Shown: piece by piece, positions 3,001 through 55,616 of the stretch | Layout of the letters: the number at the start of each line of letters is the position of its first letter | Position numbering within the stretch: the stretch's first letter is position 1 | DNA from: Octopus bimaculoides | Lineage: Eukaryota | Length of the DNA: 64,000 bases | Reading direction: 5' to 3' | Assembly (NCBI RefSeq): GCF_001194135.2 | Contig: NC_068981.1 | Span: forward strand, 158,595,560-158,659,559 | The notes under the pieces: model-generated | Seen by the model: only the letters and a program-made list of their open reading frames with translations | Database searches by the model: none | What the model was told of the DNA's origin: nothing | Program-made: the position numbers and the translations under genes

Positions 3001-4529
3001 AAACATGTTTTCATACTCAGAATTGCTGAAGCATTGAATAAATTACCCACTTCAGGACACTGCATCCTTCAGAAATTCCATGTTTCCCAAAATTCACCAA
3101 CACTACTCCTGAAGTGCTTATGCACTCTTTCCTGTTCATGGCTCTTTTACAGTTCACTTTTCATGGACAGGAGTTGGGGTTGTGTATTATTAAAAATGTG
3201 CATTCACCATCATTTAGCTATTATTGCTGTCTTTCTTAATTTAATTTATTGCTGCTTTATGTTACCCCTTTTACCCTTTTCTGTCAACTGATAGTGCACT
3301 TGAGCACAGTATACACGTTCATTATAATATCATTATCATAATCATCAACCTCATGGAATCCCTCTTAAGTAAGGTACCTATCTAGCAGGATTTTTAATTA
3401 GGTAAAGTATTGCAGAATTCAGTACTAATATTGACCAAGGTGGATAGGGTGTCTATGCTTCTAAGATGAGTAACTGGATTGGTTTCCTGTTATCTTCTTC
3501 GAGCCCATAAATGACTTGAACTCAGTACAGCAAAGTTCCAGTAGATATAATCCAACACTTGGTTTAACACCACCATCTAACATTTGGTTACTTTGAGCAG
3601 AAAGTTTTCAGACAATGTCTCTAGTCTGACTATAACTTGATGATAAGAATAAAAGACAACAAATCTGGAGAAAGAGAACAAATAAATGAGCCCCACTATT
3701 TGAGCCATATTTATTCCCATGAAGAAGCCTCTATGCAGAGGCTCAATCTGCTAGACTGACCAGAGCTCACTCAAATCATAGCCACACTATACACTATGAT
3801 ACACTACACAAACTCACAGACAGCATACTGCACTATACACTATAAATACATACAGACACCATATGCTAGAGCACACCACTAACCATAGTACACACACTTT
3901 CTACATTGCACAAACATTACATCACACATTCCACAAACACACTAATAAATACCATATGCATTACACTCCATGCATGCACGTAGGCTCACACCACACATGC
4001 ACACACATTATACTACACAGTTCATCATCACAGATCCACTATCCAGCAAATAAACTGTTTTGTTGTATGTATATAGGTCCTCCAAAACCCAGCACATACG
4101 AAAGAAAGCTTCAGACTCTGGCTGACAACATACCCATCATCACAGTTCCCTGTCTCTGTGCTACAGAACAGCATCAAAATCATCAATGAGCCACCAAAGG
4201 GTCTAAGAGCAAAACTGCTGCAGTCTTATTCAAGCAGTCCTGTAGCTGAACAGCAATTCTTTGAGTCTTGCAACAAACCACGGGTGAGTAAAGATTACAT
4301 TGTTCTTTTATCAATGTTGGGATCATCATCATCATTATTATTGATATGCAGATAATTGTGGACAATTTTCAAAGCAGTGTTAAGGTGGTGGGGGGTAGTA
4401 ATGCCTTTTTGGGATAAAATCTACAAGCATGGACTGGGTTATTTAAAGTAAAGTGTCTAGTGATAAAATACAAACTGAGTAGTCTTTTATTGATATCAAA
4501 TTTATAATCTATCAAATTTATAACCTATT

Positions 4530-4576
<47 letters not shown>

Positions 4577-5156
4577 ACCTTTCCTTTTGCCTCTAATTAA
4601 ATATAATGAAGAATTGTGTTTTCTTTGTTTGTGGATTTATTGCAGGTGTTTAAGAAACTTTTGTTTGGCCTCTGTTTCTTCCATGCCTTGGTACAAGAGC
4701 GACGCAAGTTTGGAGCCCTTGGCTGGAATATTCCATACCAGTTCAATGAATCTGATCTCAACGTTTCTATACAGCAGTTGCAGGTATTTGTATTTTACAT
4801 AAAAAGTTTAAAGAAAATACCTAGGGATGTCTGTTGCATAAAAAAACAAATGGTAAAATGACCCTAACATACTTGTAGAAACCAAGAAATTTCAATTGAT
4901 TAAAAATTCTCCATTTGTATGATCAACAAAAAAGCAAAACAATCTTAATGATTGGCAGCATTTTGTCCATCTTCACATTCTGAGTTCAAATTCTACCAGG
5001 GTTGACTTTGCCTTCCATCCTTTCAGGGTCGATAAATTAAGTACCAGTGAAACACTGAGGTTGATTTAATAGACTAGTTCCCTTCCCCAAAATTTCAGGT
5101 CTTGTGCTTTTAGTAGAAAGGATTGTTATTATTATTATCATTATTATTATTATTAT

Positions 5157-5201
<45 letters not shown>

Positions 5202-5205
5202 AAGT

Positions 5206-5246
<41 letters not shown>

Positions 5247-6159
5247 TAGTAACTCTAGTCACTATCATCTCTTTGTTATTCATTGATTGCAAACCATAAT
5301 GGTTTTATCATATTATGTAGATGTTGATCAATGACTATGAAGATCCCCCATTGGAAGCCCTGGTTTACCTGACAGGTGAGTGCAACTATGGTGGTCGAGT
5401 GACCGACAACAGTGACCGACGCCTTATTATGAGTCTACTCAAGAAGTTCTACTGCCATGACATTATTGTGAATGATGACTATAAATTCTCCGAGAGTGGC
5501 TTATATTATGCTCCACCCTGTGGCAGTTTGGACTGTTACCTGGAATACATCCGTGGGCTGCCTTATATACCACATCCTGAGGTAAGTCTGGATATGTTAA
5601 CACAGTTCAGTGATAGGGATCAGAGTATGGTGTTGATTTTGTGTTGGTGTGGAATGAAGAGTGGCTGGAAGACATACATACATACATACATACATACATA
5701 CATGCATGCATCAAGTGTTGACACAAGGGAAACTCCTCCTTTCTGTCTCACTTCAACTAGAGACTTCTTGACTAAAGAAATAAGTTCTCTAACATTATAC
5801 AGAGCATCCTTGATAGGGCCCCTTCTTACTCATCAAGAATTTTCAATTGTCAGATCTGCCTTCATAAGAAACTGCATATACTGCAACAGCTGTAGCCATC
5901 AATAGGAAATCTGATCTACTCTACTATTATCACCAAAGATACACCCTGTTAATGAACTTCAAATCATTAGCTACAGACAACCCAAAAAGTCCACTTTAGC
6001 TTCAGCTGACCCATACACAACTGCAAATATGCAATTCCTGTTTGCCCTTAGTGAGATTATTTCCCTTCACTAACATCATGGCCTACTATCACTCAGCTAA
6101 AATCATACAGTGCAGCAATGTTCCATATGAAAACTGATAAACAATCCAACACCACCAGA

Positions 6160-6246
<87 letters not shown>

Positions 6247-9200
6247 ACACATATATGCATATTTATGCATGTATCGTCTAATTTTATGTTTACTTGTACA
6301 TACCTTATATCTTACTGCCACCACAATTCTTCAATTCTTTTATCAGGTATTTGGTCTACATGAAAATGCTGACATTTCTAAAGACCAGCAAGAAACACAG
6401 CAACTATTTGAGGGTGTTCTCATGACTCTTCCTAAACAGGTAACATTTTATCTTTAGAATTTTAAGAAACTATTTTGACAGTAATGATGTCATTGAAACC
6501 CAGTGGTTATGAGGGTAAGGTTCTGAACAACTATCAAAAGTGCATAAGTTCAATCTGATTACAGTCGTTATGTTTTACCCCTTGGGCAATTTACAGAGCA
6601 CTGTTTGACTGAGTTTGCCTAACTACAGTGGGATGATATTGAGGGAAGGTTGTATAAGTAGAAAGAAACTGCTCAAAAATACACTATCATACTCATACTA
6701 ACACAGAATCAATATACCATACCTGTATGTAGTATTTATAAATGTATCTTAGCTGTAATTAACTTGCAACAACTATAATGTCATTCCCATGAGCAAGGAG
6801 CATACATTTATATAACCAAGTTTGTTTTGGTAACATGTTTCATGTTATGTATTACTTCATTGTTGAGTAGCTTGCTGAAGTGCTATTATCATCCAACATA
6901 TCTAATAATAATCTCCAGATCTTATAGTATCCTCTAATCCATACCATACTGAGAATATAAGATGTAAAATATTAACAACATCCTCCAATCCATGCTACAC
7001 TGGAAACATTGGATGTAAAATAGAATCACAAAGGTGCAAGGTCACAAATTATGAATGTGTGAAATACGGTTGCTTTTCTACAACCATGTATCTTCTGAAT
7101 TTCTATATATTGTTCATGTTGTCATTTTTATAAATACATTTATCGTATATCTACTTCATCATACTACCACCACTCCAACCATAATCATCATTATCATCAT
7201 CTTCATCATCATCATCATCATCGTTTAACGTCCGCTTTCCATGCTAGCACGGATTGGATGATTTGATTGAGGACTGGTGAACCAGATGGCTACACCAGGC
7301 TCCAATCTGATTTGGCAGAGTTTCTACAGCTGGATGCCCTTCCTAACGCCAACCACTCCAAGAGTGTAGTGGGTGCTTTTACTTGCCACCGGCACGAAGG
7401 CCAGTCAGGCGGTACTGGCAACGGCCACACTCAAAATGGTGTATTTTACGTGCCACCTGCACAGGGCCAGTGCAGCGGCACTGGCAACGATCTCGCTTGA
7501 ATGTCTTTACACGTGCCATCCGGCACGTGTAATGAAGGAGACGACGTTGGCATGGGTGCCAGTCGTTGGATTTAGTTCGATTACGATTTCACTTGCCTCA
7601 ACAGGTCTTCGCAAGCAGAGTTTAGTGGTCTTCGCAAGCAGAGTTTAGTGGTCTTTGCAAGCAGAGTTTAGTGGTCTTCGCAAGCAGAGTTTAGTGGTCT
7701 TCGCAAGCAGAGTTTAGTGGTCTTCGCAAGCAGAGTTCAGTGGTCTTCGCACATCATTATTTTTATTTTTCATGCTGGCACAGGTTGGATGAACAAGGTC
7801 AATTCTTATTCAGAATGACTGTCCTGATTCATATGTTTGTGCACAAGTACATAATTTTTTTTCATGTGCATATGTGGAAGTATGTATTCATATGTGTTGT
7901 TTATGCTTTGTCTAGGAGTACGTATATTTGTTTCATGGACAAGTAACTCTGAGTGTTTGCTTACAGGTGTGTGCACATGTGTGAGCCTTAATATTTAGAT
8001 CTTTAAAGCTATCTTCATGCCTACAGATCTTCTCCACCACAGCATCTCACCACTTGTCACAGCCCATTGTCATCTTCTTCATGAAGTTCATCCTTTCAAG
8101 ATCAGCATTCACCACACCTTTCCATGTCTTATTTAGTCTCCTTTTTCTACTAATTCATTCTGTTTGTTCTTTTAATCAATTATCATCCATCATATGCTTT
8201 ATATATCCACACCAGCTCTCTCTCTCTCCCCTCTTTCTCTCCCTTTTTCTCGTGTACACTGCTTCTTGTACACCTATGCCCAGTTTTTCTCTCACTTCAT
8301 TTGTTCTCCATTATTCAACCCACTAAAATTATACATCTGGCATCACATGTTCACCTCATTTCTTTTCTTACATTTACAAATCTTGCACATTCAATACAGT
8401 ATATCTCTTTACCATTTAGCACCATGCTTCACACAGAGGCATCATATTGTCTGCCCTTTACTCTGAAATGGAACCCAGCAGAAGTTATAGCTCTTGAACT
8501 GTTTCTATCCTGCTCTTATTCTGTCTGCTATGCTTTCAAGTCAACTACCTCCATAGCTAAGATGGTCGCCTAGGTAATAGAAGCTATCAATTATTTCTAG
8601 ATAGTCTTCCTGCCATTTGAATGAATTTATTTCACTGAAATGTTTAATAATAACTATATCTGTGCCTCTGATGCAAACAAAGTCTATTTTCTTGATCAGC
8701 CTACTTGTGATAACACTACACTTCATTGTTCACACAGGGTGTACCACAAGGAATTCTCACAACTTTTCTGTATACTGAGCATGGATATATCTCATATTCT
8801 TAGCTTTAAAAATTATTACAGAGCTTTAGATAATCAATACTTTCCTTTGTCATTAAAACAGTGGTAGTATAGTGCAGTGCAAAGTAAACTTGATATAATG
8901 TCTAGAATGTTTCTTATATTTTTAATACTTAGTGAATATAAAGCTTCAAGACTCACAAAAATTGATCAATCCTTGTAAACTTCATTGGTAACAATAATAA
9001 TCATTGAGTTATATAGTAACCTTGTTTTGTATATGTGGTTTCTAATTTTCAGTCTCTCTTTGCAACAGACATTGGGTGCTGGGAAGTCATCTCAAGATAT
9101 CATCGAAGACTTGGCCAGTGATATCCTCTCCAAAATGCCAGCTGCATTTGAAGTTGAAGAAATTCAGGTATGGTACATTTCTTTCCAAAAAATGTGAAAC

Positions 9201-12200
9201 TAGTACAATATATTTGTTACAACAAATATATGAAGTGCTTTCATGCAGATGGGATTTTAGTTTCCCCTGTTATTTTAGCCAACCAGAAATTTTAACTTTG
9301 AAAACTGATAACAGTTTGGAAGTCATTGGGTGGCAGGGCTAGTTTAGAATAAAAGCATGTGATTATTTTATTTTAGATTCATTGTCATCACATGTCATTT
9401 TAACCAATTAAACATTTTATTAAATCAGAAATTTTAACCAATGAGAAACTGTCGTTTGTGAAGCTTAGTTTTAACTGTTTTGAGTAAGCAAAAATTTGGA
9501 CTAAAGGTCCTCACTTGTCACATTTGCTCAACACCAAACAAGCCTGTCTCTCTCTTCTAATGATTTTCATTCTGATAACAACCATGCATAAGCTGTTACT
9601 TTATAATCTCATTCCATTCTCTCTTTCCTGGCTAGACATTAGCTTTGGTCTAACCTTAACAGAATAATTTCTACCAGTTTAAATACATATACACTTATCT
9701 GACTTTCCTTTTTATCACAAGCCATTTATTTGCTGGCACATGTTTAACACTGTAGCACAAATTATTCCACTGAAATAAAAAGATGAAAGTATCTATGTTC
9801 ATTTTTCTAAATAACATTTCTACAACATAAATTATCTAATGGACTTATCAATGTACATTCTCACAAATGCATGTTTATAAATTTTGTTGTGCAAAGTATT
9901 TATTTTCCAATGTAATATTTTCAGTAATATACCCTATGTATGAATCTTCTCATATTTTAAGCTGTATTCACAAAACATGTGCAGTTTAATCTTTATTGCA
10001 TTATTTGACCATGAAAATCAGTTGTTGATATTTAGGAAATAAAAGGAAGATTTATATATAATTCATTTTACTTGTTGCTTCTATTAACATTCTTTTAACT
10101 TCCTCCATCATGTGATCTGGCAGTTTTGGTACCCGTGCCAGACGGTTCTTGCCTGCTGTGTGTAATCTTTGCACTATGCATCTATATGAGAGAATCTCTT
10201 AAGGTGAATACTGCAGTATTCAGCATTCTAATAATACATTCATATTGAGTAAGATATGAAGATTGCCAATCAATGATAATAATAATGATGATAATGATAA
10301 TAATTATCACTACAATTTATTTATTCCAATCAAATATATTCAATACACAACCATAAAAACAACTGTCCTCTGTTTATCTCTTCAGAAGAAATATGCAGTC
10401 AGTTATCATGAATCAATGAATACAGTACTGGTACAAGAGTTGTTACGCTTTAACAGATTACTAAAAGTGATCATATGGAGTCTGGAGGAGATTCAGAAAG
10501 CTATCTATGGCTTAGTAGTGATGTCAGCCAAATTGGAGAGGATTGTTAACAGTATGATTGTCGGCAAGGTAGGCATTTTCTTTAATTTCTCTCACCTTCA
10601 TCATCATCATCGTTTAACGTCCGCTTTCCATGCTAGCATGGGTTGGACGATTTGACTGAGAACTGGTGAACTAGATGGCTACACCAGGCTCCAATCTGAT
10701 TTGGCAGAGTTTCTACAGCTGGATGCCCTTCCTAATGCCAACCACTCCGAGAGTGTAGTGGGTGCTTTTACGTGCCACTGGCACGAAGGTCAGTCAGGAG
10801 GTACTGGCAACGGCCACGCTCAAAATGGTGTATTTTACATTCCACCTCTCTGACAAAATATTCTTTTCTTATTTTGGCACAACACCAGCAATTTTTAAGA
10901 GTGAGGAAGTCAGTTACATCAACCCCAATACTTAACTGATACTTATTTCATTGACCCCCAAAAGGATGAAAGATAAAGGTGACCTCAGAACAGAGACAGG
11001 TGAAATGCTGCTAAGCATTTTGTCCAGCATGCTAATGATTCTGTCAACTTTCTGTCTTTCTCTCTGACAAAATATTGATATACAATATCAAATGTAAGCC
11101 ATATAAATGTTGTATGACATGTCAAAATTAAATAACAGTCATCATCATCATTTAACATTTGTTTTCCATGAGGGCATGGGTCGGATGGTTTGATAGCTTC
11201 ACAAACGACATCAGAGAGTTGCCCAGGCTGCAGCTGTCTATTTTGGCTTGCTTTCTACAGCTAGTTGCCATTCCTAATACCAACCACTAGGTACTTTTAA
11301 TGTGGCATTGGCATGGGTGTTTTACATGTAGTACCTGCATGGGTACTTTATATGTGACACTGGCACTGGTGCTTTCTACATGGTAGTGACATGGATGCTT
11401 TTCATACAGCATCATCATGAGTGCTGTTAATGTAGCACTGACATAGGTATTGTTAATGCAACATTAGCACAGGTGTTATTCATATGGCACTGGCATGAAT
11501 GTTTTTTACATGGCACAAGCACTATCAAATGTCAAATAAATGATATAATAATCTTTAATCTAATATTAAGAATATTACATTAATTCAGCAATTACATCAT
11601 GGGAAAAACATTTTACCTAACTAAAAATACACAAAACCTGTTAAATTATTTCTTAAGGTGTTAACTGACACAATTCCATTGTGGAACTGTGTCAGTAACA
11701 ATAGAACAGCAAAACTTTTAATCCTTCAAGAAATAACAGGAAAATTAATCTAGCAGTTTTTGAGTGCTAAAATGGTACTTCCCAGGGTTGTTGCATGACT
11801 TTTAGAGGCCCCCTGCAACTTTTTGTTTCGAGGCCCCATCTCTTCAATCAAAATTCAAAAGAAGCTTCAATTTTATTTAGCCAGAACTAAATATGAATAA
11901 ATGGTGTATTAATTGTTTAATGGTATATTTAATTGTTAACTGATATTAAATGTATGATGTGTTAATACTTTATATTAAATAGTAAACGTATGTATTACTT
12001 ATCTAATACTAAACGATATTTTATATATTAATGTTCTTTTATTCATTTTCCTACAATGTTTAGGTTCCAGCAGTGTGGGCAGAAAAATCTTACCCTTCTT
12101 TGAAGCCTCTGGGGAGTTATGTTTCAGACCTTCTTGCACGAATACAATTCTTCAATGTATGTGTTTGGAATTTTTTTGTATTTAGTTCTGTATGAGATAG

Positions 12201-15200
12201 ATAGAAAGAAGGAGAGGAAAGAATAAAATACACAAGAGAGATCGAGAGACATGTAGATAAGCTGTGAAAGTATGTGGGAATATTTTGGAATGGAAAGTGA
12301 AAAAATTAGAGTATAAGAGTGGAGGAGCAAGGCAGAAAAAAGAACAAAAATGAGAGAAATGTTGAGGTAGAGAGAAAAAAATATTATAGACTGAGAAACA
12401 GAAGAGATAGCCACAGTTACAGGAGATAGGTGATAGGACAGTGAATTAACTTCTGGAGTACTAATTATTCTAAACTTACTGCATACTCACATCAAACTAG
12501 TTCTGTGTGTGTGTTTGTATATATGTGCAAACATATGCTTATGTATCTCTGTGTTTGTTTGCTTTTGCATTGGCTTCTATGAAAGTTGGATCTACAAATG
12601 CTGATGTCACTTCTCTTATCAACAAATTATTTTCTCACTTCACTCCTTCAAAGATGTATAGAATAACAGATCCTTCATTTGAAAAACAAGTGAGGGTTAG
12701 TAAGAGGAAGGCATCCAGCAGTAAAACAAAGCTTTAATAACATATTTATCTAACCCAAAACAGATGTAAAGCTGCATGAATGAATAACTGTATATGTATA
12801 TTGTTTGTAGCAACTTATAAACAGTTAAATTAAATATCCTAACTATTTTCTACTGTTTGGCTGGTGTCTTTTCTAATGAATTTATTTTTGCAATGTTTCA
12901 CTCTTTAAGCATTGGATATCTGAAGGTCAACCAACAGTCTTCTGGATATCTGGTTTTTATTTCACTCAGTCTTTCCTGATGGGAGTCATGCAAAACTATG
13001 CTCGGTCTCATAAAATCCCCATTGATCACCTGACACTCAGCTTCAGGATCATGAAACAAGAACATGAAATGCCCAGTAAACCAGTAAGTTACAAATTTTA
13101 ATTTCTGAGATGAGTTACTGTGACAAGAGTTAACATTCAGATCTATAAAAACCAATCTCATATGTGCATAACCTCTACACTGGGATGCTTTTCCTAATGC
13201 CAACCATTTAACAGTGTGTACTGGGTGTTATTTACATGAGCAGGGTATATTAGAGGAACATATATATCATCATTTCCATCATCATTTAATGTACATCTTC
13301 CATGCTGGCATGGGGCAGACAGTTTCAGGAGCTGGCAAGCCAGAGGACTGCACCAAGCTCCACTGTCTGTTTTGGCATGGTTTTTACAGCTGGATGCCAT
13401 TCCTAATGTCAGCCACTTCAGAAAGTGGACTGGGTGCTTTTTATGTAGCATGCTCACATTTTTATATTTCTGATAATCAGCTATATTTAAAATCATTAAT
13501 CAAGTTGTTTTGTTTCTATATTGCGTTTTAGTGTTTGATTAGGAGACTGTTGTTAATGTTCTAGTTGTTGTTCTTTATTAGCCCCAAATTAGCCCTGGTG
13601 AAGCAGATATATGGTCAAATGCACTTCACCCATGACATCCCATCCTTTTGTTTAGCTAGGACTACATTCTCTAAAGTCTTTTTTTTTAAAGAAAAATTAA
13701 CTGCAATTTCTAGTAATTCAAATAACTGCATACAATCACTTTCAAATTCTAGTTATTACTGATATTGTTAAATTCTAGTTATTTCTGTTGATGAAGTTTA
13801 TCTCCAGGTTCAGTAGACTGAATTAAATAATCAAAGTTGTTCCAACCTTAACCATCCCATCTTTTTCTCTAGCAAGGAACTCTCCCTGCTTTGTAATCAC
13901 AAGAAATTTGGCTGCTATTTCAAATGGGTCAATGTGTAATGGTTTCTTCTTTGCCCTTGTTACTGGATATTTGTTTAGTAACCTCAATAAGTTCCAACTG
14001 AACATTGTTTCAGATAAATAACCAATCAAATGTCTTGTTTAGCTGACTTGAGTATGAGCGTAGTCTCATCCAAAGATTCTTCTAATTTATATATATATAT
14101 AAGGTTAAAGACCCCTTTCAGTCATGAATGACCATGGAATTGCATCTAGGAAGTTCCCCTCAGAGGCACAAGTCCAGGCACAATTGGTTATGGAAGACCA
14201 GTAGTTGCCTGTGCATACCAGCTTCTCTCCCCTCTCCATGCCACTGATGTTACCCAAGGAAAAAAAGCAAAGGCCTATACAACTTGGCACCAGTGACATC
14301 GCAACTCATTTTTACAACTGAGTATACTGAAGCAATGTAAAAATAAAGTGTCTTGCTCAAGAACACAACACATAGCCCAGTCCATAAATCAAACTCACTA
14401 ACCCATGATTGTGAGTCTGACATGCTAACCACTGAGAACTTGTACATCTCCTATTTAATTTAATTCAAATACCATCTTAAATATTGATGTTATGTTTTAC
14501 AATGCACTGCACTAAGCACCATTTTCCTTTAAAAAATACTGTCCTCATACTTAATTTCAGATAACAGGGGCTTACATCAATGGTTTGTTCTTAGAAGGAG
14601 CATGTTGGTGTCGACAGGCTGGAATCCTTTCAGAAGCACTACCAAAAGTTCTTTATGATTTGATGCCAATTGTATCCTTCAAATTTTAATAAGAGTTTAG
14701 GACCATAGAACTTTTTTTTTTTTGCATGGTTTTATATATACATTTTAACTGTGGTATGAGTAAGCTTTCAAATTTAAACATTTGGATATTGATGAGCAAG
14801 TGATGTCATTGCTACCATTATGCAATCAAAAAAATAGAAGTCAAACCTATTATCAGCAAACTGACTGAGGGAAGTGGAATCATGTGCTTGGTTTTAAGAA
14901 ACACTATAAAAGGTTCCCACCACATTGATAGAATATATCAAACTCACAGAAGGATGTAAAACAAAAAGATCAACCAAGACAAGATTTTGACCACTGAAAC
15001 TTAAGGCGAGACAAAATAGATTACTATTAATTGCATCAATATCATCTATTCTACATTTTAAGCAGTTATTACAGCATTGAATATTCTTTTCTACTCTAGG
15101 CACAAGGCCTGAAATTTGGGGGGAGGGGGCCAGTTGATTAGATCGACCCAGTATGCAACTGGTACTTAATTTATTGACTCTGAAAGGATGAAAGGCAAAG

Positions 15201-17911
15201 TCAACCTCAGTGGAATTTGAACTCAGAACGACAGCATTGAATATTGTTGTTACAGTATTGAAATATTGAAATAATTTTAAATTTTCTGTGCTCTGAATTC
15301 AAATTCTCCTGCAGTTAACTTTGCCTTTCATACTTTCAAAGTTGATTAAGAGTCAGTCAGGTACTGGAGTTGATTTTTCTTTCTCTCAAAATTGGCAGTA
15401 CCGAACACGATGGTGTGTTGTAAAAGACATCCAAAGAAAGGCAATGGGTGGAGCGCTTTTGTATTTTCCCCAGGAAGATTTGATGACCAACACCATGTTA
15501 CATGTCACTGCAAGTTGTAAGAACCATGTTCAACCTTTGTGGGTATTTTTAGTTTGAAGAAGTCAATACAATTACTGTTTAGCTTTAACAATAGCTCAAA
15601 TAGATGCTAGACATTACTCCATAAAACAGGTCCAGTAAGTCATTTAAGGACTTTTTTTATAGAATCTCTTTTGCCTCTTTGGTTAAGCAAAATTATATTC
15701 ATAATCATTGATCTATATGACATCAAATGTGGGTGATACTTTGACTCAGTAAGATTATACCCTTAATTCACAGTTAGATATGGATAAAACCAGTAAAGAA
15801 GGAAGAATTTCAAGCAGAAGAAAATTATCAATGTCCAGGTAAACATTTTTTTTTTTTTTTTTTTACTAAGAGATAAGGTGATATAAACTAAATCATTCGC
15901 ATATAAAATTAAACAAAAATTATTGCTTTTTCATCTTGTAGTCTGATCATGCTACCACTACAACACACACACATATATATAACAAAACATCGTTTACATA
16001 AATTCGAATTAAAATATGATAGCTGGCTTTCAAAATTAACTATAGTTCAGACATTGGGAATTGTTTTTATTTGTTGTGGGCAAATCATACTTTTGTTAAT
16101 GAGCAAATCATTGCCTCGCAAAAGAAATACACAGAATTTTAAACTTTGAAACAGACTGAATGACTACAGTGAGAGTACCAACACAGTCAAACAGGAATTG
16201 ATGAGTATGAGGTACGATTGGTTGAAAAGGATATCTTAAATTAACCAATCATATGTTCTTTTTAAAATAGCTTACTGGAGCCCAGTGAACCTATAAAAAA
16301 CTGTAGGTTGAGGCTCTCACATTTAGAGTTGATCTGGTCAGTAAGTATGGCTCAAGTCAACCTTGTTTCTCTCATGCACACATTCCAACATCCCTTACAT
16401 TCTTTCGCTATCATAATGAATTATAACAAGGACTTTCATAAATGATCTGCATACCCTTTGAATGTTGAATTTTAAAATACCAATTGACTGTTACTGTTAA
16501 ATCATTATCATTAGTTTAATGTCCACTTCTCCATGCTTGCATGGATCAGATGGAATTTGTTGTGACAAATTTTCTACAGCCAGATACCCTTCCTGTCCAA
16601 CCCTCACCTGTTTCCAAGTAAGGTAATTATTTTCCCATTACAAAACATGTTTCACAAAAGACCAGAAACATACGATGCTGATGTACAACAATGACACTTG
16701 TTTACAACTATCATGCAATGTCAAGACAAGATAAGACCAACTCACACACAAAAATACAAATATACAACAGGCTTATTTCAGTTTCCATCTACCAAATCCA
16801 CTCACAAGGCTTTTGTCAGCCTGGGGCTGCTTGACATTCAAGGTGCCAAGCAGTGGAACTGAACACTGAACCATATGGTTGTGTAGCAAGCTTAACTACA
16901 GTCATACCTATTAATATAAGTAAAACAAAGTTTTGTGACTGTTAGTGAAATTAAACAATGTTATAAAAAAATGAAAGTAAGACCTTTTTGTCATCAGTTA
17001 CTCGACTGACTGGATAGCAAAAACTCTGTGAAAAACAGCAATCTTTTTCAGTAAAAATTCAGGGAAAGTTAAACATCAAGGGAAATTCTTCTCAGGAATA
17101 ATAAGAGCTTCCATTCTTGGTAACATAAATATTATTATATTTTAATAATGATCTAATGTAATGTAAATAAATAAGTGTTCAGATCTCTTCACTGAGGATA
17201 AGGGATCAATCTCTTATTAACAGCTTTACCTATTTTAAATTGGAACTATTTTCCTGTAACACTGTTTTGTTGCATAATACAGTTCTATATTTAAGAGATG
17301 AGGAATTATGTACATTATTTACAATTGATGGATATTTGTTCTCATCTTGTTTGTTGTTAACACAACGTTTCGGCTGATATACCCTCCAGCCTTCATCAGG
17401 TGTCTTAGGGAAAGTTTGAACCTGAGTTTTCATTCCTTAAGTATTTTCGATGTTGTTATTATCATTATTAAGGTCACTGCCTGGAATCGAACTCAGAATC
17501 TTGGGGTTAGTAGCCCGCACTCTTAACCACTATGCTATATGCCCAGGCATATGGCATAGTGGTTAAGAGCACGAGCTACTAACCCCAAGATTCCAAGTTT
17601 GATTCCAGTCAGTGGCCTGGATAATAATAACATCGAAAAATACCTTAGGAATGAGAACCCAGGTTCGAAATTTCTCCAAGACACCTGAAACGTTGTGTTA
17701 ACAACAAACAAGATGAGGACAAATATCTGTCAATTGTAAATAATGTAAATAATGTTTTGTTGCAGTTTATAAGACAAGTGCAAGACGAGGTAATTTATCT
17801 ACAACTGGACATTCTACCAATTATGTGCTGACCATACAACTGCCAAGCAACAGAGATGAGGATTACTGGATAAACCAAGGGGTCGCTTTGCTTTGTCAAC
17901 TTGATAATTAA
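1..17911 (+). CDS. DNAH3: Axonemal inner-arm dynein heavy chain (DNAH3/7/12 group, best match DNAH3), 3' part: AAA6 and C-terminal domain, 15 exons
   Basis: Spliced exons 1-23, 677-854, 1794-1867, 2809-2895, 4077-4283, 4646-4783, 5321-5581, 6347-6439, 9069-9167, 10386-10568, 12064-12156, 12910-13083, 14561-14671, 15778-15838, 17766-17911 join in frame with GT-AG ends. Motifs: [93 protein letters not shown]-terminus [10 protein letters not shown] matches the DNAH3 ending as I recall it. Family is secure; paralog choice less so. Confidence 0.85.
677..854 (+). CDS. DNAH3: Dynein HC exon (MIPAIQNFI...[18 protein letters not shown])
   Basis: Acceptor caccAG, donor GTAGGT, 178 nt, phase 0 to 1. 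Confidence 0.9.
1249..1588 (+). mobile_element. tRNA-derived SINE with 11-bp TSD
   Basis: A box TGGCTCAGTGG, B box GTTCGAATCCC; TSD ACCTGATAAAA at 1238-1248 and 1589-1599; another copy at 14109-14440(-), partial at 27330-27500(+). Confidence 0.88.
1794..1867 (+). CDS. DNAH3: Dynein HC exon ([25 protein letters not shown])
   Basis: Acceptor tatAG, donor GTATGT, 74 nt, phase 1 to 0. Confidence 0.9.
2809..2895 (+). CDS. DNAH3: Dynein HC exon ([29 protein letters not shown])
   Basis: Acceptor gtcAG, donor GTAAGA, 87 nt. Confidence 0.9.
4077..4283 (+). CDS. DNAH3: Dynein HC exon ([21 protein letters not shown]...[10 protein letters not shown]...SCNKPR)
   Basis: Acceptor tatAG, donor GTGAGT, 207 nt. 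Confidence 0.9.
4532..4572. repeat. (CT)n microsatellite
   Basis: Read directly. Confidence 0.95.
4646..4783 (+). CDS. DNAH3: Dynein HC exon ([46 protein letters not shown])
   Basis: Acceptor ttgcAG, donor GTATTT, 138 nt. Confidence 0.92.
4955..5135 (+). mobile_element. Short SINE (gagttcaaatt...ctttgcctttcatcc family) with (ATT)n tail
   Basis: B-box-like GAGTTCAAATT and shared body; other copies near 10860-11050(-), 15086-15230(-), 15293-15400(+), 23120-23460(-), 23630-24000(-), 31900-32040(-), 42215-42430(-), 63490-63660(+). Confidence 0.75.
5126..5245. repeat. Compound microsatellite (ATT)n-(AGT)n-(AGC)n
   Basis: Read directly; continues the SINE tail. Confidence 0.95.
5321..5581 (+). 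CDS. DNAH3: Dynein HC exon (MLINDY...[11 protein letters not shown]...LPYIPHPE)
   Basis: Acceptor tgtAG, donor GTAAGT, 261 nt. Confidence 0.92.
6161..6250. repeat. (CA)n microsatellite, about 90 bp
   Basis: Read directly. Confidence 0.97.
6347..6439 (+). CDS. DNAH3: Dynein HC exon ([31 protein letters not shown])
   Basis: Acceptor atcAG, donor GTAACA, 93 nt. Confidence 0.92.
7190..7751 (-). mobile_element. 5'-truncated RTE-type LINE 3' end with (GAT)n tail
   Basis: (CAT)n then cgtttaacgtccgctttccatgctagc...ggatgcccttcctaacgccaacc; same family at 10603-10850(-), 30250-30395(+), 34880-35097(+), 38806-39235(-), 45583-45960(-). Confidence 0.8.
7604..7751. repeat. Minisatellite, 23-bp unit GGTCTTCGCAAGCAGAGTTTAGT, about 6.4 copies
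   Basis: Units start at 7604, 7627, 7650, 7673, 7696, 7719. Confidence 0.95.
8030..8620 (-). mobile_element. RTE-clade LINE C-terminal ORF remnant
   Basis: [44 protein letters not shown] on the minus strand. Confidence 0.75.
9069..9167 (+). CDS. DNAH3: Dynein HC exon ([33 protein letters not shown])
   Basis: Acceptor caacAG, donor GTATGG, 99 nt. Confidence 0.9.
10386..10568 (+). CDS. DNAH3: Dynein HC exon ([23 protein letters not shown]...SMIVGK)
   Basis: Acceptor cttcAG, donor GTAGGC, 183 nt. Confidence 0.92.
10603..10850 (-). mobile_element. RTE-type LINE 3' fragment
   Basis: Near-identical to 7205-7450; begins 35 nt after a dynein donor site. Confidence 0.8.
12064..12156 (+). CDS. DNAH3: Dynein HC exon ([31 protein letters not shown])
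   Basis: Acceptor tttAG, donor GTATGT, 93 nt; not in the ORF track. Confidence 0.92.
12910..13083 (+). CDS. DNAH3: Dynein HC exon ([25 protein letters not shown]...EMPSKP)
   Basis: Acceptor tttaAG, donor GTAAGT, 174 nt. Confidence 0.92.
14109..14440 (-). mobile_element. tRNA-derived SINE, same family as 1249-1588
   Basis: Reverse complement aligns along the whole body. Confidence 0.85.
14561..14671 (+). CDS. DNAH3: Dynein HC exon ([18 protein letters not shown]...VLYDLMPI)
   Basis: Acceptor tttcAG, donor GTATCCTT (U12-type), 111 nt. Confidence 0.9.
14672..15777 (+). other. U12-type (minor spliceosome) GT-AG intron
   Basis: 5' site GTATCCTTC; branch motif TACCCTTAAT at 15758-15767, about 11 nt before the AG at 15776-15777; no polypyrimidine tract; flanking exons join as MPI|IWIKP. 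Confidence 0.85.
15086..15230 (-). mobile_element. Truncated short SINE with 15-bp TSD inside the U12 intron
   Basis: ACAGCATTGAATATT at 15071-15085 and 15231-15245. Confidence 0.8.
15778..15838 (+). CDS. DNAH3: Dynein HC exon ([20 protein letters not shown])
   Basis: Acceptor gttAG, donor GTAAAC, 61 nt, phase 0 to 1. Confidence 0.88.
17275..17752. mobile_element. Fold-back element: two head-to-head tRNA-headed units with Penelope-like, hammerhead-bearing tails
   Basis: Inverted arms 17311-17543 and 17546-17747 around atatgcc-ca-ggcatat; 12-bp direct repeat TGTTTTGTTGCA at 17263-17274 and 17753-17764. Confidence 0.85.
17359..17404 (-). ncRNA. Minimal type I hammerhead ribozyme (Penelope-like)
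   Basis: Minus strand GACAC-CUGAUGA-A-GGCUG-gaggguauau-CAGCC-GAA-ACGU-U-GUGUU: stem I GACAC/GUGUU, stem II GGCUG/CAGCC, palindromic ACGU helix III, GUU cleavage triplet. Confidence 0.75.
17766..17911 (+). CDS. DNAH3: Dynein HC last coding exon ([20 protein letters not shown]...[10 protein letters not shown])
   Basis: Acceptor ttgcAG, 146 nt, ends TAA. Confidence 0.93.
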
Positions 17912-21615: not shown

Positions 21616-24211
21616 TTAAAAGGGACATAGAACAATTTCATATCAATGCAGCTGATAGAATTTTTACTGTCATAATTTTCTTTTAGTGGTTTCAGTCATG
21701 CTTAGGCAAGGTCTTCAAAAGTTTTAGTCAATATCATCATCCCTAGTGCATAGAGGAACATATCCATTCAATGAAATACCAGACTAAGTCTCTTGTAAAG
21801 ATGTAAAAACTATAAGGTATTTACACCCGTATATATAAAGTGCCAGATTGATTCAGGTTCATGGAATTATTAGAGCATCAGATGAGATGCTTGGTGGTAT
21901 TTATTCAGGCCCTCTGTATTCTGGCAGCAACGACTATAATGACACTAGTCAAGCAGGAAAGCCCTTGCCTTCCCATTAACTCTTTAGCCTTCACATAACC
22001 CAGTCAAAAATAATGCTTATTTATTCATTGTTTTCAAATTAATCAGGTGTTCTCTTGTTTTGAGATTTCAATGATATGATTGTTTATTTGGGCCTGATAC
22101 AGCTAGTTTAAATGCTAAGAGGGGGAAACTTGCACGTATGGCAAATTACTCTGTTGAGGCACTTTTCTAGTACAGAACCATGCCATTACAAAATGGAGAG
22201 GTATTAGTCAACTCTAGGTTATAATAGAAGAGACATGCCCAAAGTGTTACGTAGTAGCATTGCACTCAAGAAATGTAGATGCAAAGCAAACTTCTCAAAC
22301 ACATGTTTTTTACTATTATTAAATATTATAGAAGAAAATTCTATTATTAGATCAGAAATTGTTTTTGTTATAAATACATTGTTTATTGATGTAACTACAT
22401 TTATAATAATAAATAAAACTACAATGTATATCTCATTATAACTGTAATAATTATATATCACAGCATCATTAGCACATTATAACAAAAAGTTTATATGTAT
22501 AACGGCAACATATTTATTCAGCATAACAGTAAAAATAAAAAACAATTTAAAAGTGAATGATGGAAGAGAGAGAGAAATATTGTAGAGATGAAGTGTTATT
22601 ACAAACTATTTGGAGTGTTAAAGCACAGCTTCTCACTATCTCCATATATATTCTTCACTAGCCAATATAATAGAAAGACATGAAAATAATTGTTACCATT
22701 CCACAGATTGTCTTGCTAATGTGTTGTTATCAGTATTTTTGTTCTTAGATTTTGTTGAAAAAAAGAAATAGAATGTTTTTTTTTAAAAAGTCCAGCAATC
22801 AATTTTATTTTTAGTAATTATAAATCATCAATGTGAAAAAAATATGAAATATATTGAAAAAAGATTTCTTTTTTTTTTTTAATATATATACATTAGCACA
22901 AAGCCACAGATCTGCAGAAGTGTAGTGTAGTTGACTGAATTAACTCCAGTATATGTACAAATATTTATATTATTAAAGTCTTCTACACCAGAGTTTGAAC
23001 TTGAACGCAGAGACACAAAACTAAATGCATATAAAATTTTACCTTTTCTGTCTCCCTGACTGAAATCTTGTCATGGCTGACTTCCCTCTTCATTTCTGCT
23101 TCACTAAAAAGTTTCTAACACTGGCACAAAGCCAGAAATTTAAGGAGGGCTATAGCTGACTGAATTCCCCCAAAAGGGGATGCAGGGTAAGAATAAATTT
23201 TGGTGAGATTTGAACATAAATGACCATAACTAAACAGAGCAAGGTATTTTTATTCAGTAATAATGATTCAACTTTCTTACATAGATACAAGACCACAAAT
23301 CTGGTGGAGTTAGTCAATGATACTAACTCCAATAATGGATTGATATATTTTATCAATCCCAGAAGAATGAGAGGTAAAGTTAACATTGGTGGGATTTAAA
23401 CTCAGAACATATAGAGCTATTTCAAGGCATTTTGTTTGACGCTCTAACAATTCCACCAATTCACCTCATAACAATAATTTATTATATAAGCACAATTTAT
23501 TATTTAAGCACAAAGCTACAAATTTATAGGGAGGAGGATAAGACAGTTATATCTCTCACAAACAGGAATAAAAACTCAAGTCACAGAATGTGCTGGACAG
23601 CAACTCTATTTTCATAGAGAATACATAATAATAATAACAGTTCCTAACTTAGGCATAAGGCAAGAAATTTCGAGAGGAGTGGGCTAGTTCATATTGTATT
23701 TTATCAACCCTGGAGGGATGAAAGGTACAGTTGATCTCAGTGGGATTTGAACTGTGTGTAAAGAGCTGGAACAAATACTGCAAGGCACTTTTTCCAATGC
23801 TCTAATGATTCTACCAGCCTGACACCCTGAAGACTGTTTCTAAAATAAGCACAAGGCCTGAAATTTGTGAGAAGCAATGGTTAGTCAGTTAAATCAATCA
23901 CAGTATTTGACTGATACTTTATTTTGCCAACCATGGAATACAAAGCTGACATCAGGGAGATTTGAACTCAATAGATGAACAGGCAGAATGAATACCATAA
24001 GGCATATTTGTGCGACACTGCCAATTTCCCATAATAATAATAATAATTTTTGTTTCTAAGTACAAAGCTACGAATTTATAGGGGAGAAGAATGGGATGTT
24101 AAAGCAGTTGTAGTTCTCACAAGAGTATTACCAAGCTAACTGAAGTAAAATTGCTTTAAACGAGAATAAACCAAGTCACAGAATAGATGAGAGGTCAGTA
24201 ATAATAATTTC

Positions 24212-24773
24212 GGATCTTTTTTAAAACGGGGGCCACATTTTTCATTAATGTTTTACGTAGTGCTTTTGGTACCGAAAGACTTTCAAACTTCGTATACTTA
24301 TCTATTTTGTGTTATAGAACAGAAAAATATTTTTGTATTCGAATTTATTTCATGTAAAAAATTGTCTTATTTCGATAATTTCAACCAATCACTGACGTCC
24401 ATTCAGCCGATATACATTAAGTGCCGACTACATAAACAAACGATTCTTCGTTTTATTTGCTTTTTTCATTTTAAATTTGCTTTAACCCTAACCCTAACTC
24501 TAACCCTAGGGTTAGGGTTAGAGTTAGGGTTAGGGTTAATTGTTTCAGAATCGTTTATGTAGTCGGCACTTAATGTATATCGGCTGAATGGACGTCAGTG
24601 ATTGGTTGAAATTACAGAAATACGACAACTTTAACATGGAATAATTTATGGATTTCTTTTTTTTTAAAGAAGTCTAAGAGAAAAAGATGTTTTATATGAC
24701 ACATTCTACCAGTGTTCCCAGTTTCAAAGTGTTTCGTTAATGAAAAATGTGGCCCCCATTTTAAAAAAGATCC
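24212..24773. mobile_element. MITE with 37-bp TIRs, GG termini and 8-bp TSD (Merlin-like), internal telomeric palindrome
   Basis: TIR GGATCTTTTTTAAAA(c/t)GGGGGCCACATTTTTCATTAA with 1 mismatch; TSD ATAATTTC at 24204-24211 and 24774-24781. Confidence 0.85.
24482..24539. repeat. Inverted telomeric repeat (TAACCC)n-(GGGTTA)n
   Basis: ttaaccctaaccctaactctaaccct|agggttagggttagagttagggttagggttaa. Confidence 0.95.
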
Positions 24774-26156
24774 ATAATTTCTTACATTTGTCCAAGGCCA
24801 CATATATATAAGGGAATAAGTAATCTATCAGCTCAATTCATGAATACTTTTAGTCCCTCTTATTTTCATTAATCCAAGTGGAGACTTTTACACTGGAAAA
24901 TTGTAATTATCTGAATTAAAATCAGTTTACCAATGGTATTTATTTTATCAATCCCAGAAAAATATAAAAGGTGGAGTCAACTATGACAAGATCTGAACTT
25001 GAAGTCAAAGAAGATAAAAAATACATTCAAAAATTGTATTTAGGCTAGTGCTCTGCTCTCAGCTACCTCCAATTATGAAAAAAAGAAAAAAAATTATAGT
25101 GTAGTGAATGAAATGTAAGGTTCATGCTTTAGTCATGAGCAATAATGGTAATAAGAAATCAATTTTAATTAGGAGCTGAAGCAAGTTCACAGAAACTACA
25201 CCAGGTAGTTGCTTCTTGTGTTAGGGTACTTGTCATACTAATGTTGGTGGTGATGATATTGTAAATGAAAACATGACTATGAAATCCTAGGAGGAAAGAA
25301 ATGGGGTGCATTGTTCATACTGTTCCAACAGAACATTAGCAGCCATTCATTCATCTTCTATCTGCTCTACTATGCACATCACACAATAATAACTTTACAT
25401 ATTGGCAAAGGGCCAAAAATGTGTAGGGGTGTTGAAAAGTTGGCTGAGTTAACTCTAGGATATTAATGTTATCTATTCTGTTAATAACAATTAAGATAAT
25501 AATTTCAATTGATTAAGCTCAGGATGACCAGCTTTTGGAGGCACAGTGTACAATTAATTGAGCAGGCCTATACATTCCAGTATGATCTTCTGGTATCAAT
25601 CTCTCTAGGATGAAATGCAAAACAAACTAAAAAAAGATTTAAACCCAAAACAAAAATGGACAAAATTACAAAACAAAATACTCTAAGGTGTTTTAGGCAA
25701 TGAGGTCTGATGCATCAGTGCTCTCTACTCAAATCATACCCCATAAAAATCATAATATAAACTTAGCATCAGTTTCAGAGTTTTCACTAACAAGATGTTG
25801 ATTCAGGAGAAATGAGAAATGGAGGGTGTGAAAATATGGAGATGGGATTGTGTGCTAAACCAGTTGTAGAAAATAGTCATTTGTTTCAAGTGAGCAAGAA
25901 GGCAGATTTAGGGGCGGGAACTCAGGAGCAACTAAGGTGTCGGCTCACTGGTTACTTATAAATAAAATCAATCTTCTATTTACTGTTTGTGTACAAGTGT
26001 TTATGTATTATCACAGACCAGTGCATTTCTTTCCAGCTGTTTTAAAAACATTCTATTACTTCACAAGGTTTTGTTGTGTATATTTATGCATTTCTGTATG
26101 TATGTGTGCAACAAAGAAAGTTTCTGAGGTTGAGCAACAGGAGGGAGAAAAAATTG

Positions 26157-54327: not shown

Positions 54328-55616
54328 TCAGGTCATCCCGTAAGTTCTGTCCGATTTTACCTTTTTTTATAGTGAATGAAATTTAATAGTATTTTAGAAT
54401 GTCTAATGGAATTAAAAATTATTTTTATGCATTTGTGTACATTTAAACTAATTAAATATTATTTTATAGAAAAGTGGAATTAAAATTTCTGTGATTAAAA
54501 CCCTTTCTAACATAGAAGTATCCAAAGAGCATTTAAGGCACATAATGCTTTATGAGTACAAAAAAGGAAACTCTGCAGCCAAAGCGACTCAAAACATACA
54601 CTCAGTTTATGGCAAAGAATGCTTGAATGAAAGAACTTGCAGAAGACAGTTTGTAAAATTCAGAAGTGGAGATTTCAGCCTTGAAGATGAAGACCGAACA
54701 GGACATTCAGCTGAGTTTGATGATAAGCTCTTTGAGGCATTACTTGAAGAAAATCCTGCATTATCAGTTGAAGAATTGACAATAAAGCTTAGTTCAAACC
54801 ATACAACTGTTCATCGTCATCTTCAATAATTTGGAAAGGTTCCTAAACTTGGAAAATGGGTGTCTCATGAATTATCCAAAAGCAACGGCAAATCCCAAGT
54901 TGACATCTGCTTTCTCTCCATTCTCGTGAACTCATTTCACCCATTTTTGATAGACTTGTGACTGGTGATGAAAAACGGATCTTCTATCGAAATGTTAAAC
55001 ATTGTAAACAGTGGCTTAGTAAAAGGGAAAAAGCTCAACCACAACCGAGAAGGGAACTCCATGGGAAAAAGGTTCTTCTCTCTATCTGGTGGGATTGCAA
55101 AGGAGCAATTCACTTTGAATCGTTACCACCTAATGCAACAATCAATGCTCAAGTCAACTGTCAGCAATTAGAGTGTTTGAACCAAGTTTTGAAGAAAAAA
55201 GGACCCGCTCTAGTGAATCGAAAAGGAGTGATGTTTCATCAGGACAATGCATGACCCCACACTGCAAAGATCACATCACAGAAGATCGAAGAGCTTGGTT
55301 GGGAAAAAATTCCTCATCCACCTTATTCTCCCGACCTTGCTCCTTCAGACTACCATATGTTTCGTAGTTTACAGAATCATTTGGAGGACATAACTTTTGC
55401 AAGCCAGGAGGAGATCGAAACTGACATTTCAGAGTTCTTCGCTTTGAAACCAAAAGAGTTTTACATTGATGGGATTAAAAAGCTTGTAAATAGATGGAAG
55501 GAAGTCATATAGATAATCAGAGAAAGTACATTGATGATTAAATTTCAATTAAATATAACATTTGATCACTTGTTTTCTCTATTCAAAATTCAGACAGAAC
55601 TAATGGGATGACCTGA
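54328..55616 (+). mobile_element. Mariner (DD34D) DNA transposon, full length 1289 bp, transposase inactivated
   Basis: TA duplications at 54326-27 and 55617-18; about 31-bp TIRs TCAGGTCATCCC(g/a)T(a/t)AGTTCTGTC; motifs VTGDEK, HQDNA, HPPYSPDLAPSDY with 34 residues between D2 and D3. Confidence 0.95.
54512..55540 (+). pseudogene. Mariner transposase pseudogene
   Basis: Probable start decayed to ATA at 54512, TAA at 54827-29, frameshift near 54910, TGA at 55252-54. Confidence 0.88.

Follow-up and report, generated by a model that had tools for sequence, protein, structure and literature searches.

A head-to-head pair of SINE-like units with a minimal hammerhead in the last acceptor of an octopus dynein gene: a probable Penelope-type insertion

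The 3' splice site of the last intron of a dynein heavy-chain gene of Octopus bimaculoides is occupied by a long fold-back element which, on our best reading, is the footprint of an insertion mechanism and not a splicing-rescue device. We analysed the stretch of 64,000 nucleotides that contains it (assembly GCF_001194135.2, contig NC_068981.1, positions 158,595,560 to 158,659,559 of the forward strand), hereafter referred to as the window, the positions given below being counted from its first letter; the GC content of the window is 35%. The reading that we favour, with a probability of roughly 0.6, is that a non-autonomous retroelement entered the dynein acceptor by the type of insertion known from Penelope-like elements (PLEs), leaving a hairpin as its by-product and an acceptor rebuilt by the target-site duplication. 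We regard the hairpin as a by-product because PLE machinery normally yields inverted head-to-head copies.

Insertion into the last dynein acceptor

The element is bounded by an exact direct repeat. The two copies of TGTTTTGTTGCA, both on the + strand, are identical over all 12 nt, and the repeat corresponds to the final 12 nucleotides of the intron minus its terminal G. The upstream copy (17263-17274) is followed by T17275 and constitutes a dead acceptor (CAT), while the downstream copy (17753-17764), which is followed by G17765, provides the current pyrimidine tract together with the CA of the CAG. The initial annotation had already recognised this duplication as the pyrimidine tract plus CA of the acceptor of the last dynein exon, had called the upstream copy dead and the downstream copy live, and had placed the insertion in the 3' splice site, and in all these respects it is borne out by the exact repeats. 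Upon removal of the insert and one repeat copy, what is left (...ttttcctgtaacac-tgttttgttgca-g|TT) is an ordinary acceptor. As read from the repeats, then, the insertion sits in the 3' splice site and splits the acceptor AG after its A. With the pyrimidine tract and the CA in duplicate, and with the original G directly after the downstream copy, the acceptor at 17765 is again complete and in phase (AG at 17764-17765, + strand, the G being the original final base of the intron). A 12-nt direct repeat of this arrangement, located at most 45 nt before the left arm and directly after the right arm of the fold-back, was encountered in 3 out of 62,301 random placements within the window (5e-5); a third, unrelated occurrence of TGTTTTGTTGCA lies at 27300. 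We searched for the empty site in relatives using the dynein C-terminus and obtained nothing above 67% identity, the best match being a spliced transcript and not genomic DNA; exact look-ups of two window open reading frames (ORFs) that adjoin the insertion gave no match.

Of the host gene, the window contains 14 exons on the + strand (674-17911), as mapped by tblastn with an orthologous transcript (L001) from a public RNA assembly. Its C-terminal 163 residues match Pfam Dynein_C with E = 2e-66 and its closest named relatives are axonemal heavy chain 3-like proteins, which points to a DNAH3-like axonemal dynein heavy chain. The penultimate exon (15778-15838, +), located by tblastn with the same transcript and by its flanks, encodes 20 residues plus the first base of a Val codon; it ends with ...TGT CCA G at 15838 and is followed by the donor gtaaac from 15839 onwards. 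The last intron (15839-17765, +) is 1,927 nt long and in phase 1, with the insertion at its 3' end, and the last coding exon (17766-17911, +) completes the valine and adds 47 residues before the stop codon. This exon opens with TT TAT AAG at 17766, G plus TT forming the Val codon, which puts the AG at 17764-17765 in phase; the junction so produced, Cys-Pro-Val-Tyr-Lys-Thr-Ser, agrees with the orthologous transcript.

The reading frame of the last exon is intact, its stop codon is at the conserved ...LLCQLDN position, and it is 80% identical to the distant orthologue, which is higher than the average of the other exons. Taken together, the frame, the stop and the identity suggest that the gene still needs its last exon. 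The pyrimidine count at positions -23 to -4 is 10 out of 20 for the rebuilt acceptor, as compared to 11-17 for the 12 other dynein acceptors and 13 for the reconstructed empty site, which makes the current acceptor the one with the lowest pyrimidine content among the 13 acceptors of the gene in the window. Judged by these counts, the rebuilt acceptor is intact yet weaker.

Two SINE-like units and a minimal hammerhead

The insert between the duplication copies is 478 nt long and consists of a 30-nt unpaired stretch, a left arm, a 2-nt spacer and a right arm. When folded as RNA, the fold-back has a minimum free energy of -314 kcal/mol (z = -29 versus dinucleotide shuffles) and a main stem of 192 bp (117 A-U, 65 G-C and 10 G·U), which runs from 17305/17753 to 17542/17547. 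A hairpin of about 200 bp had been annotated initially and is indeed there, although the limits then given, 17311-17747, were slightly too narrow as compared to 17305-17753. The left unit (239 nt, 17305-17543) has its sense on the - strand and contains a box A (17527-17537), a box B (17483-17493), a ribozyme and the AU-rich tail TGTAAATAATGTACATAA. Its 3' end is extended by the one-sided 30-nt tail (17275-17304, -), which is without a partner in the right arm. The right unit (207 nt, 17546-17752), with its sense on the + strand, contains a box A (17552-17562) and a box B (17596-17606) and ends in a tail made of two copies of TGTAAATAA (17735-17752). The units meet at a near-palindromic head-to-head junction, where a CA spacer of 2 nt (17544-17545) lies between them. 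The reverse complement of the left arm and the right arm (17546-17753) are 87% identical over 208 positions, the 27 differences being 21 transitions and 6 transversions, to which a 5-nt and a 26-nt indel are added.

Both units begin at the identical base, with GGCATAT, and box A follows six bases on. The boxes in question are those of RNA polymerase III (Pol III) promoters: box A is perfect in both units and box B, about 33 nt past box A, is near-perfect (A and B being TGGCATAGTGG and AGTTTGATTCC on the + strand, and TAGCATAGTGG and AGTTCGATTCC on the - strand). Pairs of A and B boxes at tRNA-like spacing are thus present on both arms, and none of 300 window shuffles gives any such pair. At the opposite end, both units are closed by an AU-rich tail, TGTAAATAATGTA(A/C)ATAA, and the sense strands have no internal T4 run. 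The promoter boxes at the heads and the AU-rich tails pointing outward mark the arms as polar units resembling short interspersed elements (SINEs), arranged with their heads at the centre. An Rfam scan returned only hairpin-shaped microRNA models, far under their thresholds, which we took as generic hairpin matches. We also considered an assembly fold-back artefact and ruled it out on account of the 13% difference between the arms and of the duplication that bounds the whole structure. As a side observation, positions 17294-17304 of the tail contain AGAGATGAGGA, which is identical to 11 nt of the last dynein exon (17852-17862), and nine of these bases (AGATGAGGA) are found again, in like orientation, within the right arm (17711-17719); this recurrence may be due to chance or may be a trace of tail templating.

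The left unit carries what reads as a complete minimal hammerhead of the PLE kind (17359-17404, -). From 17404 to 17359, the sense strand is GACAC-CUGAUGA-A-GGCUGG-AGGGUAUA-UCAGCC-GAAAC-GU-U|GUGUU, i.e. a helix I (GACAC/GUGUU), the core CUGAUGA, an extra A, a helix II (GGCUGG...UCAGCC) and GAAAC-GU-U, with cleavage predicted after the U. According to Cervera and de la Pena, PLE ribozymes share four features, which include G10.1-C11.1, a palindromic 15.2-16.2 (ACGU) that replaces helix III, and a short helix I (PMC4209133); the hammerhead of the left unit shows all four. We scanned for minimal hammerheads with a descriptor of our own, built from the published features of PLE ribozymes, and this motif was the sole match on both strands of the 64 kb, with no match in any of 200 shuffles. 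In the right unit, a 26-nt deletion between 17686 and 17687 (relative to 17372-17397) has removed exactly GAUGAAGGCUGGAGGGUAUAUCAGCC, and with it the ribozyme core and helix II. The ribozyme is therefore lost from the unit that is oriented with the dynein transcript and kept in the antisense unit, and the deletion is bounded by GA microhomology; this one-sided loss may be a matter of chance, may stem from a polymerase that jumped over the helix II hairpin as it copied back, or may reflect selection to keep the pre-mRNA free of a ribozyme. A literature search with the ribozyme sequence string found nothing relevant.

Relatives of the element were found by translating the antisense ribozyme region and using it as a protein query, the matches being spurious ORFs with the tandem motif IVFIFIVISTTFRPICPPAFFRCL. 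A second search, with one of these spurious ORFs, yielded 1,015 ORFs; nearly all of the 120 that were listed originate from ENA assembly ERZ21867824 (about 36% GC), and one of the listed matches comes from NCBI GCA_052426985.1. What five loci that we fetched have in common with the window is limited to a module of 68 nt, 82-88% identical, which spans the ribozyme and some 25 nt downstream of it. When 12 copies are aligned (the window copy and 11 from other assemblies), helix II is 95.8% paired. At its fourth pair nine copies have C-G and one has U·G, while the window copy and one other have U-A; this shift from C-G to U-A is a compensatory change.

In ERZ21867824 the ribozyme module is found inside a longer element, as 129-nt partial tandems, and one insertion of this element ends in a (TA)n microsatellite. 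At one locus of the assembly (L004, 9967-10494) an antisense tandem and a 5'-truncated copy in sense orientation adjoin head to head, and an extension of about 34 nt is present on just one side. In the sequences L002-L005 the element reaches at least 150 nt upstream of the tRNA-like segment, and its 3' end (...CAGAAATTTAGACAAC) is located just ahead of the start of the next tandem ribozyme; unit ends and ribozyme position thus seem to be coupled in this element. A pattern scan of metagenomes for the unit gave zero matches. In O. bimaculoides, an exonised antisense copy of the unit is present at the C-terminus of the NUP42 model (A0A0L8FR24), with 72% identity over about 40 residues in this one protein, which was found with a chimeric ORF query.

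Mode of insertion and its alternatives

PLE insertions have an adjacent inverted, 5'-truncated copy at the 5' end and often a tail of 30-40 bp at one end only; the length of their target-site duplication varies because the distance between the two nicks varies, and PLEs are carried by Octopus species (PMC8557442). In a rotifer case, a 31-bp tail stands at the 3' end of one inverted pseudo-long-terminal repeat (pLTR), the duplications are 8-10 bp long, and palindromic head-to-head junctions are read as the result of self-priming (PMC3846280). In good agreement with these descriptions, the insert in the dynein intron combines four features of PLE insertions: an inverted head-to-head copy, a one-sided tail of 30 nt, a minimal hammerhead and a 12-bp duplication.

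Such an insert could arise by target-primed reverse transcription followed by self-priming or template switching, which would generate the inverted copy, with staggered nicks at a variable distance giving the duplication. In the order of events that we propose, the + strand would be nicked after ...GTTGCA, and the left unit would be reverse-transcribed from its 3' end, i.e. from the tail, to its 5' end. The enzyme would then copy the new strand back, producing the right unit, and this copy-back would halt 30 nt short of the start, after which the product would be joined at the second nick, 12 nt upstream. We place the left unit first because the opposite order, with the right unit as the primary one and synthesis proceeding into the flank, predicts an inverted target copy to the left of the left arm, and none is there. 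Two further candidates were rejected: twin priming of the LINE-1 type, which would invert a different segment and not the same one, and an independent insertion of the right unit, which lacks a duplication of its own. Both PLE mobilisation and this order of events are what we infer from the anatomy of the sequence. If the arms were identical at the time of insertion, their present divergence of 13% would make the insertion an old one.

Several observations weigh against the PLE-type reading. The window contains no PLE reading frame and no autonomous PLE, and blastn found no second copy of the unit in it. With 12 bp, the duplication exceeds the 8-10 bp of the rotifer cases, even if the literature treats its length in PLEs as variable, and the arms differ by 13% and by two indels, so that they either were identical long ago or derive from two different copies. 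No tRNA cloverleaf is detected in the element by ARAGORN, and the Rfam tRNA model is absent even at E <= 10; because no cloverleaf is detectable, the term 'tRNA-derived' refers here to the promoter boxes only. Finally, the Rfam hammerhead models, which need helix III, do not match the element, and the ribozyme call draws on our own descriptor and on cross-genome conservation.

A miniature inverted-repeat transposable element (MITE) or a Foldback-type DNA transposon, moved by cut-and-paste and with the 12 bp as its duplication, would likewise appear as a long inverted repeat flanked by a direct repeat, and the window does contain other fold-back repeats (24206-24779). However, 30 unpaired nucleotides part the left duplication copy from the inverted repeat, and the inverted repeat proper is not flanked by a short direct repeat. 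At its true ends the whole insert reads TAATACAG... and ...TAAATAA, sequences that are no inverted repeats of each other, which disfavours cut-and-paste, and the arms are polar, with promoter boxes, ribozyme and tail, and with their heads at the centre. To our knowledge, moreover, no common superfamily of DNA transposons makes a duplication as long as 12 bp, and we hold an origin as a DNA transposon to be highly improbable. The divergence of the arms and their two indels would be in line with two separate events, either independent insertions of the same SINE in opposite orientations or a later inverted duplication of a single insertion at the DNA level; another SINE family in the window does have neighbours in opposite orientation, one of them with its own 18-nt duplication (15071-15248). 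Yet a single pair of duplication copies flanks the whole structure, with none beside the head of the right unit, and the heads meet at the same nucleotide across a 2-nt spacer. An origin in two events is therefore decidedly unlikely in our estimation, and insertion of the PLE type remains the reading that we prefer.

Compared with known systems, the element is like PLEs (Penelope/Poseidon, Neptune, Naiad) and their pLTRs in its near-palindromic head-to-head copies, its tail at one end (30-40 bp in PLEs) and its variable type of duplication, and also in its minimal hammerhead with an extra base before helix II and the palindromic ACGU. Unlike PLEs, it has no reverse transcriptase or GIY-YIG frame, its copies open with Pol III A and B boxes and are not 5'-truncated PLEs, and its duplication is 12 bp long as opposed to 8-10 bp in the cited rotifer cases. 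The Sm-alpha and Sj-alpha elements of Schistosoma are reportedly SINE-like retroposons with hammerhead ribozymes, in accounts attributed to Ferbeyre et al. in 1998 and Laha et al. in 2000. As reported, they share with the window element the build of a short, non-autonomous retroposon with a Pol III type-2 promoter and a type I hammerhead; they belong to another phylum, and their ribozymes are said to be canonical with a short helix III, whereas helix III of the ribozyme in the window is reduced to ACGU. We know of no description of an inverted-dimer insertion for these elements. The metazoan non-LTR retrozymes are small, AT-rich, non-autonomous elements with type I hammerheads, with molluscs among their hosts (Cervera and de la Pena 2020, PMC7229834). 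The window element resembles them as a small AT-rich hammerhead repeat, and its relatives in ERZ21867824 occur as short tandems; retrozymes, however, come as tandem arrays of some 300 nt from which circular RNAs are produced, whereas the window element consists of one inverted pair in which a single ribozyme is intact. On our best reading by analogy, the closest precedents are the Sm-alpha elements, as reported, and the metazoan retrozymes, and the element is not a MITE; the locus belongs to known kinds of system and not to a new kind.

The choice of target deserves a remark as well. A GTTTTGTT-like tract is found at the insertion site and beside two insertion ends in ERZ21867824. In the family that bears the ribozyme, several insertion ends adjoin a GTTTTG(TT)-like sequence (L003, about 3100-3120; L004, 10490-10510 and 9955-9975), which is the same motif as that at 17263-17274 in the window. 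With up to one mismatch, CTGTTTTGTTG is modestly enriched in the window (8 found versus 3.3 expected); at 4055-4065 the motif serves as pyrimidine tract for another dynein acceptor, and it also occurs at 27299, after TACTAAC. There may be a target preference for GTTTTGTT-like tracts that steers the elements into acceptors, or this may merely be a common T/G-rich motif.

Splicing across the hairpin and the surrounding window

The branch-like CTGTAAC is located at 17254-17260 (+), precisely where the initial annotation had put it, and in the reconstructed empty site its A17259 stands at a distance of 16 nt from the AG. According to the fold prediction, this motif forms a local hairpin of 7 bp (-5.9 kcal/mol) with the upstream copy of the duplication. 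At 47 nt, the empty site also offers a stricter CUUUACC (A17228). With A17259 only 16 nt away from the AG and this second motif available, it is uncertain which nucleotide served as the ancestral branch point.

Between the old branch site and the stem, four AGs are exposed (starting at 17281, 17294, 17296 and 17301). The first of them belongs to a decoy acceptor, aauaCAG (17280-17282, +), which follows A17259 at a distance of 23 nt and is preceded by the upstream pyrimidine-tract copy, itself intact. Its pyrimidine count is 12/20, as compared to 10/20 for the real acceptor, and its use would result in a truncated protein (VLYLRDEEL...RFG*). A spliceosome assembled on the old branch should favour 17282, since this is a good CAG at a distance of 23 nt and behind its own pyrimidine tract, and we infer that a decoy 3' splice site has arisen there from the old branch site together with the upstream copy of the duplication.

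As for the real acceptor, the AG-free zone that precedes it (17718-17763, +) lies wholly within the element tail and the duplication, the first AG upstream being at 17716-17717. This zone contains only two UNAy motifs, AAUAAUG, with its A17743 at 22 nt before G17765, and a further copy whose A17752, at 13 nt, is probably too close to the AG. These motifs place the current branch point, as a prediction, in the last 45 nt or so of the intron, most likely within 17740-17752, with A17743 in the AU-rich tail of the element as the most likely nucleotide. On this route, which is the simplest one, the duplication would supply the tract and the CA, the element tail would supply the branch, and the weak outer end of the stem would have to open. 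Speaking against this assignment, the element tail that holds A17743 has a pairing level above 99% in the thermodynamic ensemble. Yet the part of the stem over the branch candidates, its outermost 16 bp, is AU-rich and contributes only -9.2 kcal/mol as an isolated duplex, and this outer end is transcribed last, together with the pyrimidine tract.

The initial annotation had suggested that the hairpin loops the insertion out and thereby renders it self-neutralising: with U2 on the old branch at A17259, the AG at 17765 would be reached across the base of the stem at about 58 nt. The geometry of this proposal stands. The distance is indeed 46 + 12 = 58 nt, the hairpin is extremely stable and its base places 17304 beside 17754, it buries 25 internal AGs, and the alternative branch candidates of the tail lie inside the stem. 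In yeast, moreover, stems downstream of the branch point are known to shorten the effective distance between branch and AG and to hide internal AGs and other cryptic sites (PMC12350175). The neutralisation by looping is not supported, since four AGs remain exposed before the stem, the first being a good CAG with its own tract, and since the tail offers A17743 as a branch candidate. Furthermore, 58 nt is long for a branch-to-AG spacing, and for the old branch site itself a pairing with the upstream copy of the duplication is predicted. Of the 21 transitions that distinguish the arms, 11 are G·U-compatible in the + strand RNA versus 10 that give A·C, and the two indels are unpaired; in this weak test on a single sequence there is no G·U excess and no sign of selection for pairing, as neutral decay predicts. 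The yeast stems are 6-20 bp long, conserved, and have no exposed AG before the real site, whereas the stem in the window has 192 bp, is of transposon origin, leaves four AGs outside and bears no trace of pairing selection. A duplex of 190 bp, far beyond the size of those stems, would also be a substrate for ADAR and helicases. We consider rescue by looping unlikely and attribute the self-neutralising quality of the insertion mainly to the target-site duplication, not to the fold-back.

Inverted Alu pairs in human introns form long duplexes that can affect splicing, are edited by ADAR and are unwound by DHX9. The window element is similar in that two inverted SINE copies form a long intronic duplex; Alu pairs, however, are independent insertions hundreds of bases apart, whereas the window pair is one unit with a 2-nt loop, 12 nt from the acceptor. 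We have little expectation that the fold-back acts as a metazoan 'downstream stem', i.e. that 25 AGs and about 450 nt are buried and the insertion is treated as a short spacer. If true, this would mean that PLE-mobilised ribozyme SINEs are intrinsically tolerated in acceptors, as insertion makes the hairpin and the staggered cut re-creates the tract.

The insertion could also fail to be neutral, with substantial use of the decoy at 17282 or intron retention yielding a dynein without its last 48 residues; it would then be mildly deleterious, polymorphic, or located in a gene under relaxed constraint. The ideal distance of the decoy from the old branch, its full pyrimidine tract, and the low pyrimidine content of the current acceptor, the poorest of the 13 in the gene (10/20), all point in this direction. 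The last exon, on the other hand, is intact, retains the conserved ...LLCQLDN stop and, at 80% identity to the distant orthologue, is above the average of the other exons, and the 13% divergence of the arms suggests a long residence if the arms were identical at insertion. We think such a burden on the gene likewise improbable, and continue to favour an acceptor rebuilt by the duplication after an insertion of the PLE type.

The window contains a number of other repeats. A different SINE family (GAGTTCAAATTCCACTGAGGTTGACTTTGCCTTTCATCC...) is represented at 15071-15420 by an antisense 5'-truncated copy with an 18-nt duplication, ACAGCATTGAATATTSTT, at 15071 and 15231, and by a sense copy 64 nt from it. 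We considered this inverted pair (15170-15349) as a second head-to-head dimer and ruled it out, the two being separate insertions, one with its own 18-nt duplication. A fold-back of 575 bp at 24206-24779, the arms of which are 93-95% complementary (24206-24248/24737-24779 and 24358-24437/24553-24632), is a candidate MITE, and a further inverted pair lies at 61046-61689. An abundant interspersed repeat is present in at least seven copies in the 64 kb (7267, 10656, 13172, 34827(-), 38939, 42794(-) and 45529), several of them inside dynein introns. A mariner/Mos1-type transposase at 54470-55509 (+), in three frame pieces that match Pfam HTH_48, Transposase_1 and, weakly, DDE_3, has probably decayed. 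A multi-exon gene for a UPF1/MOV10-like superfamily 1 RNA helicase (about 28100-49400, -), with Pfam AAA_11, AAA_12 and an S1-like domain, is oriented convergently to the dynein gene.

The locus presents a clean natural case of a mobile element one base from an exon, in which the gene apparently survives by way of an acceptor rebuilt by the duplication. It illustrates that a hairpin of such length in an intron can go back to a Penelope-type insertion and need not be an adaptation. It also records, in a cephalopod, a retroposon that combines a Pol III promoter with a minimal hammerhead, the ribozyme module of which, with its compensatory change, is common to an abundant family in a different animal assembly. 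Finally, with a decoy that has the old branch, a rebuilt site that follows 480 nt later, and a duplex of 190 bp in the interval, the locus lends itself to testing how the metazoan spliceosome makes its choice.

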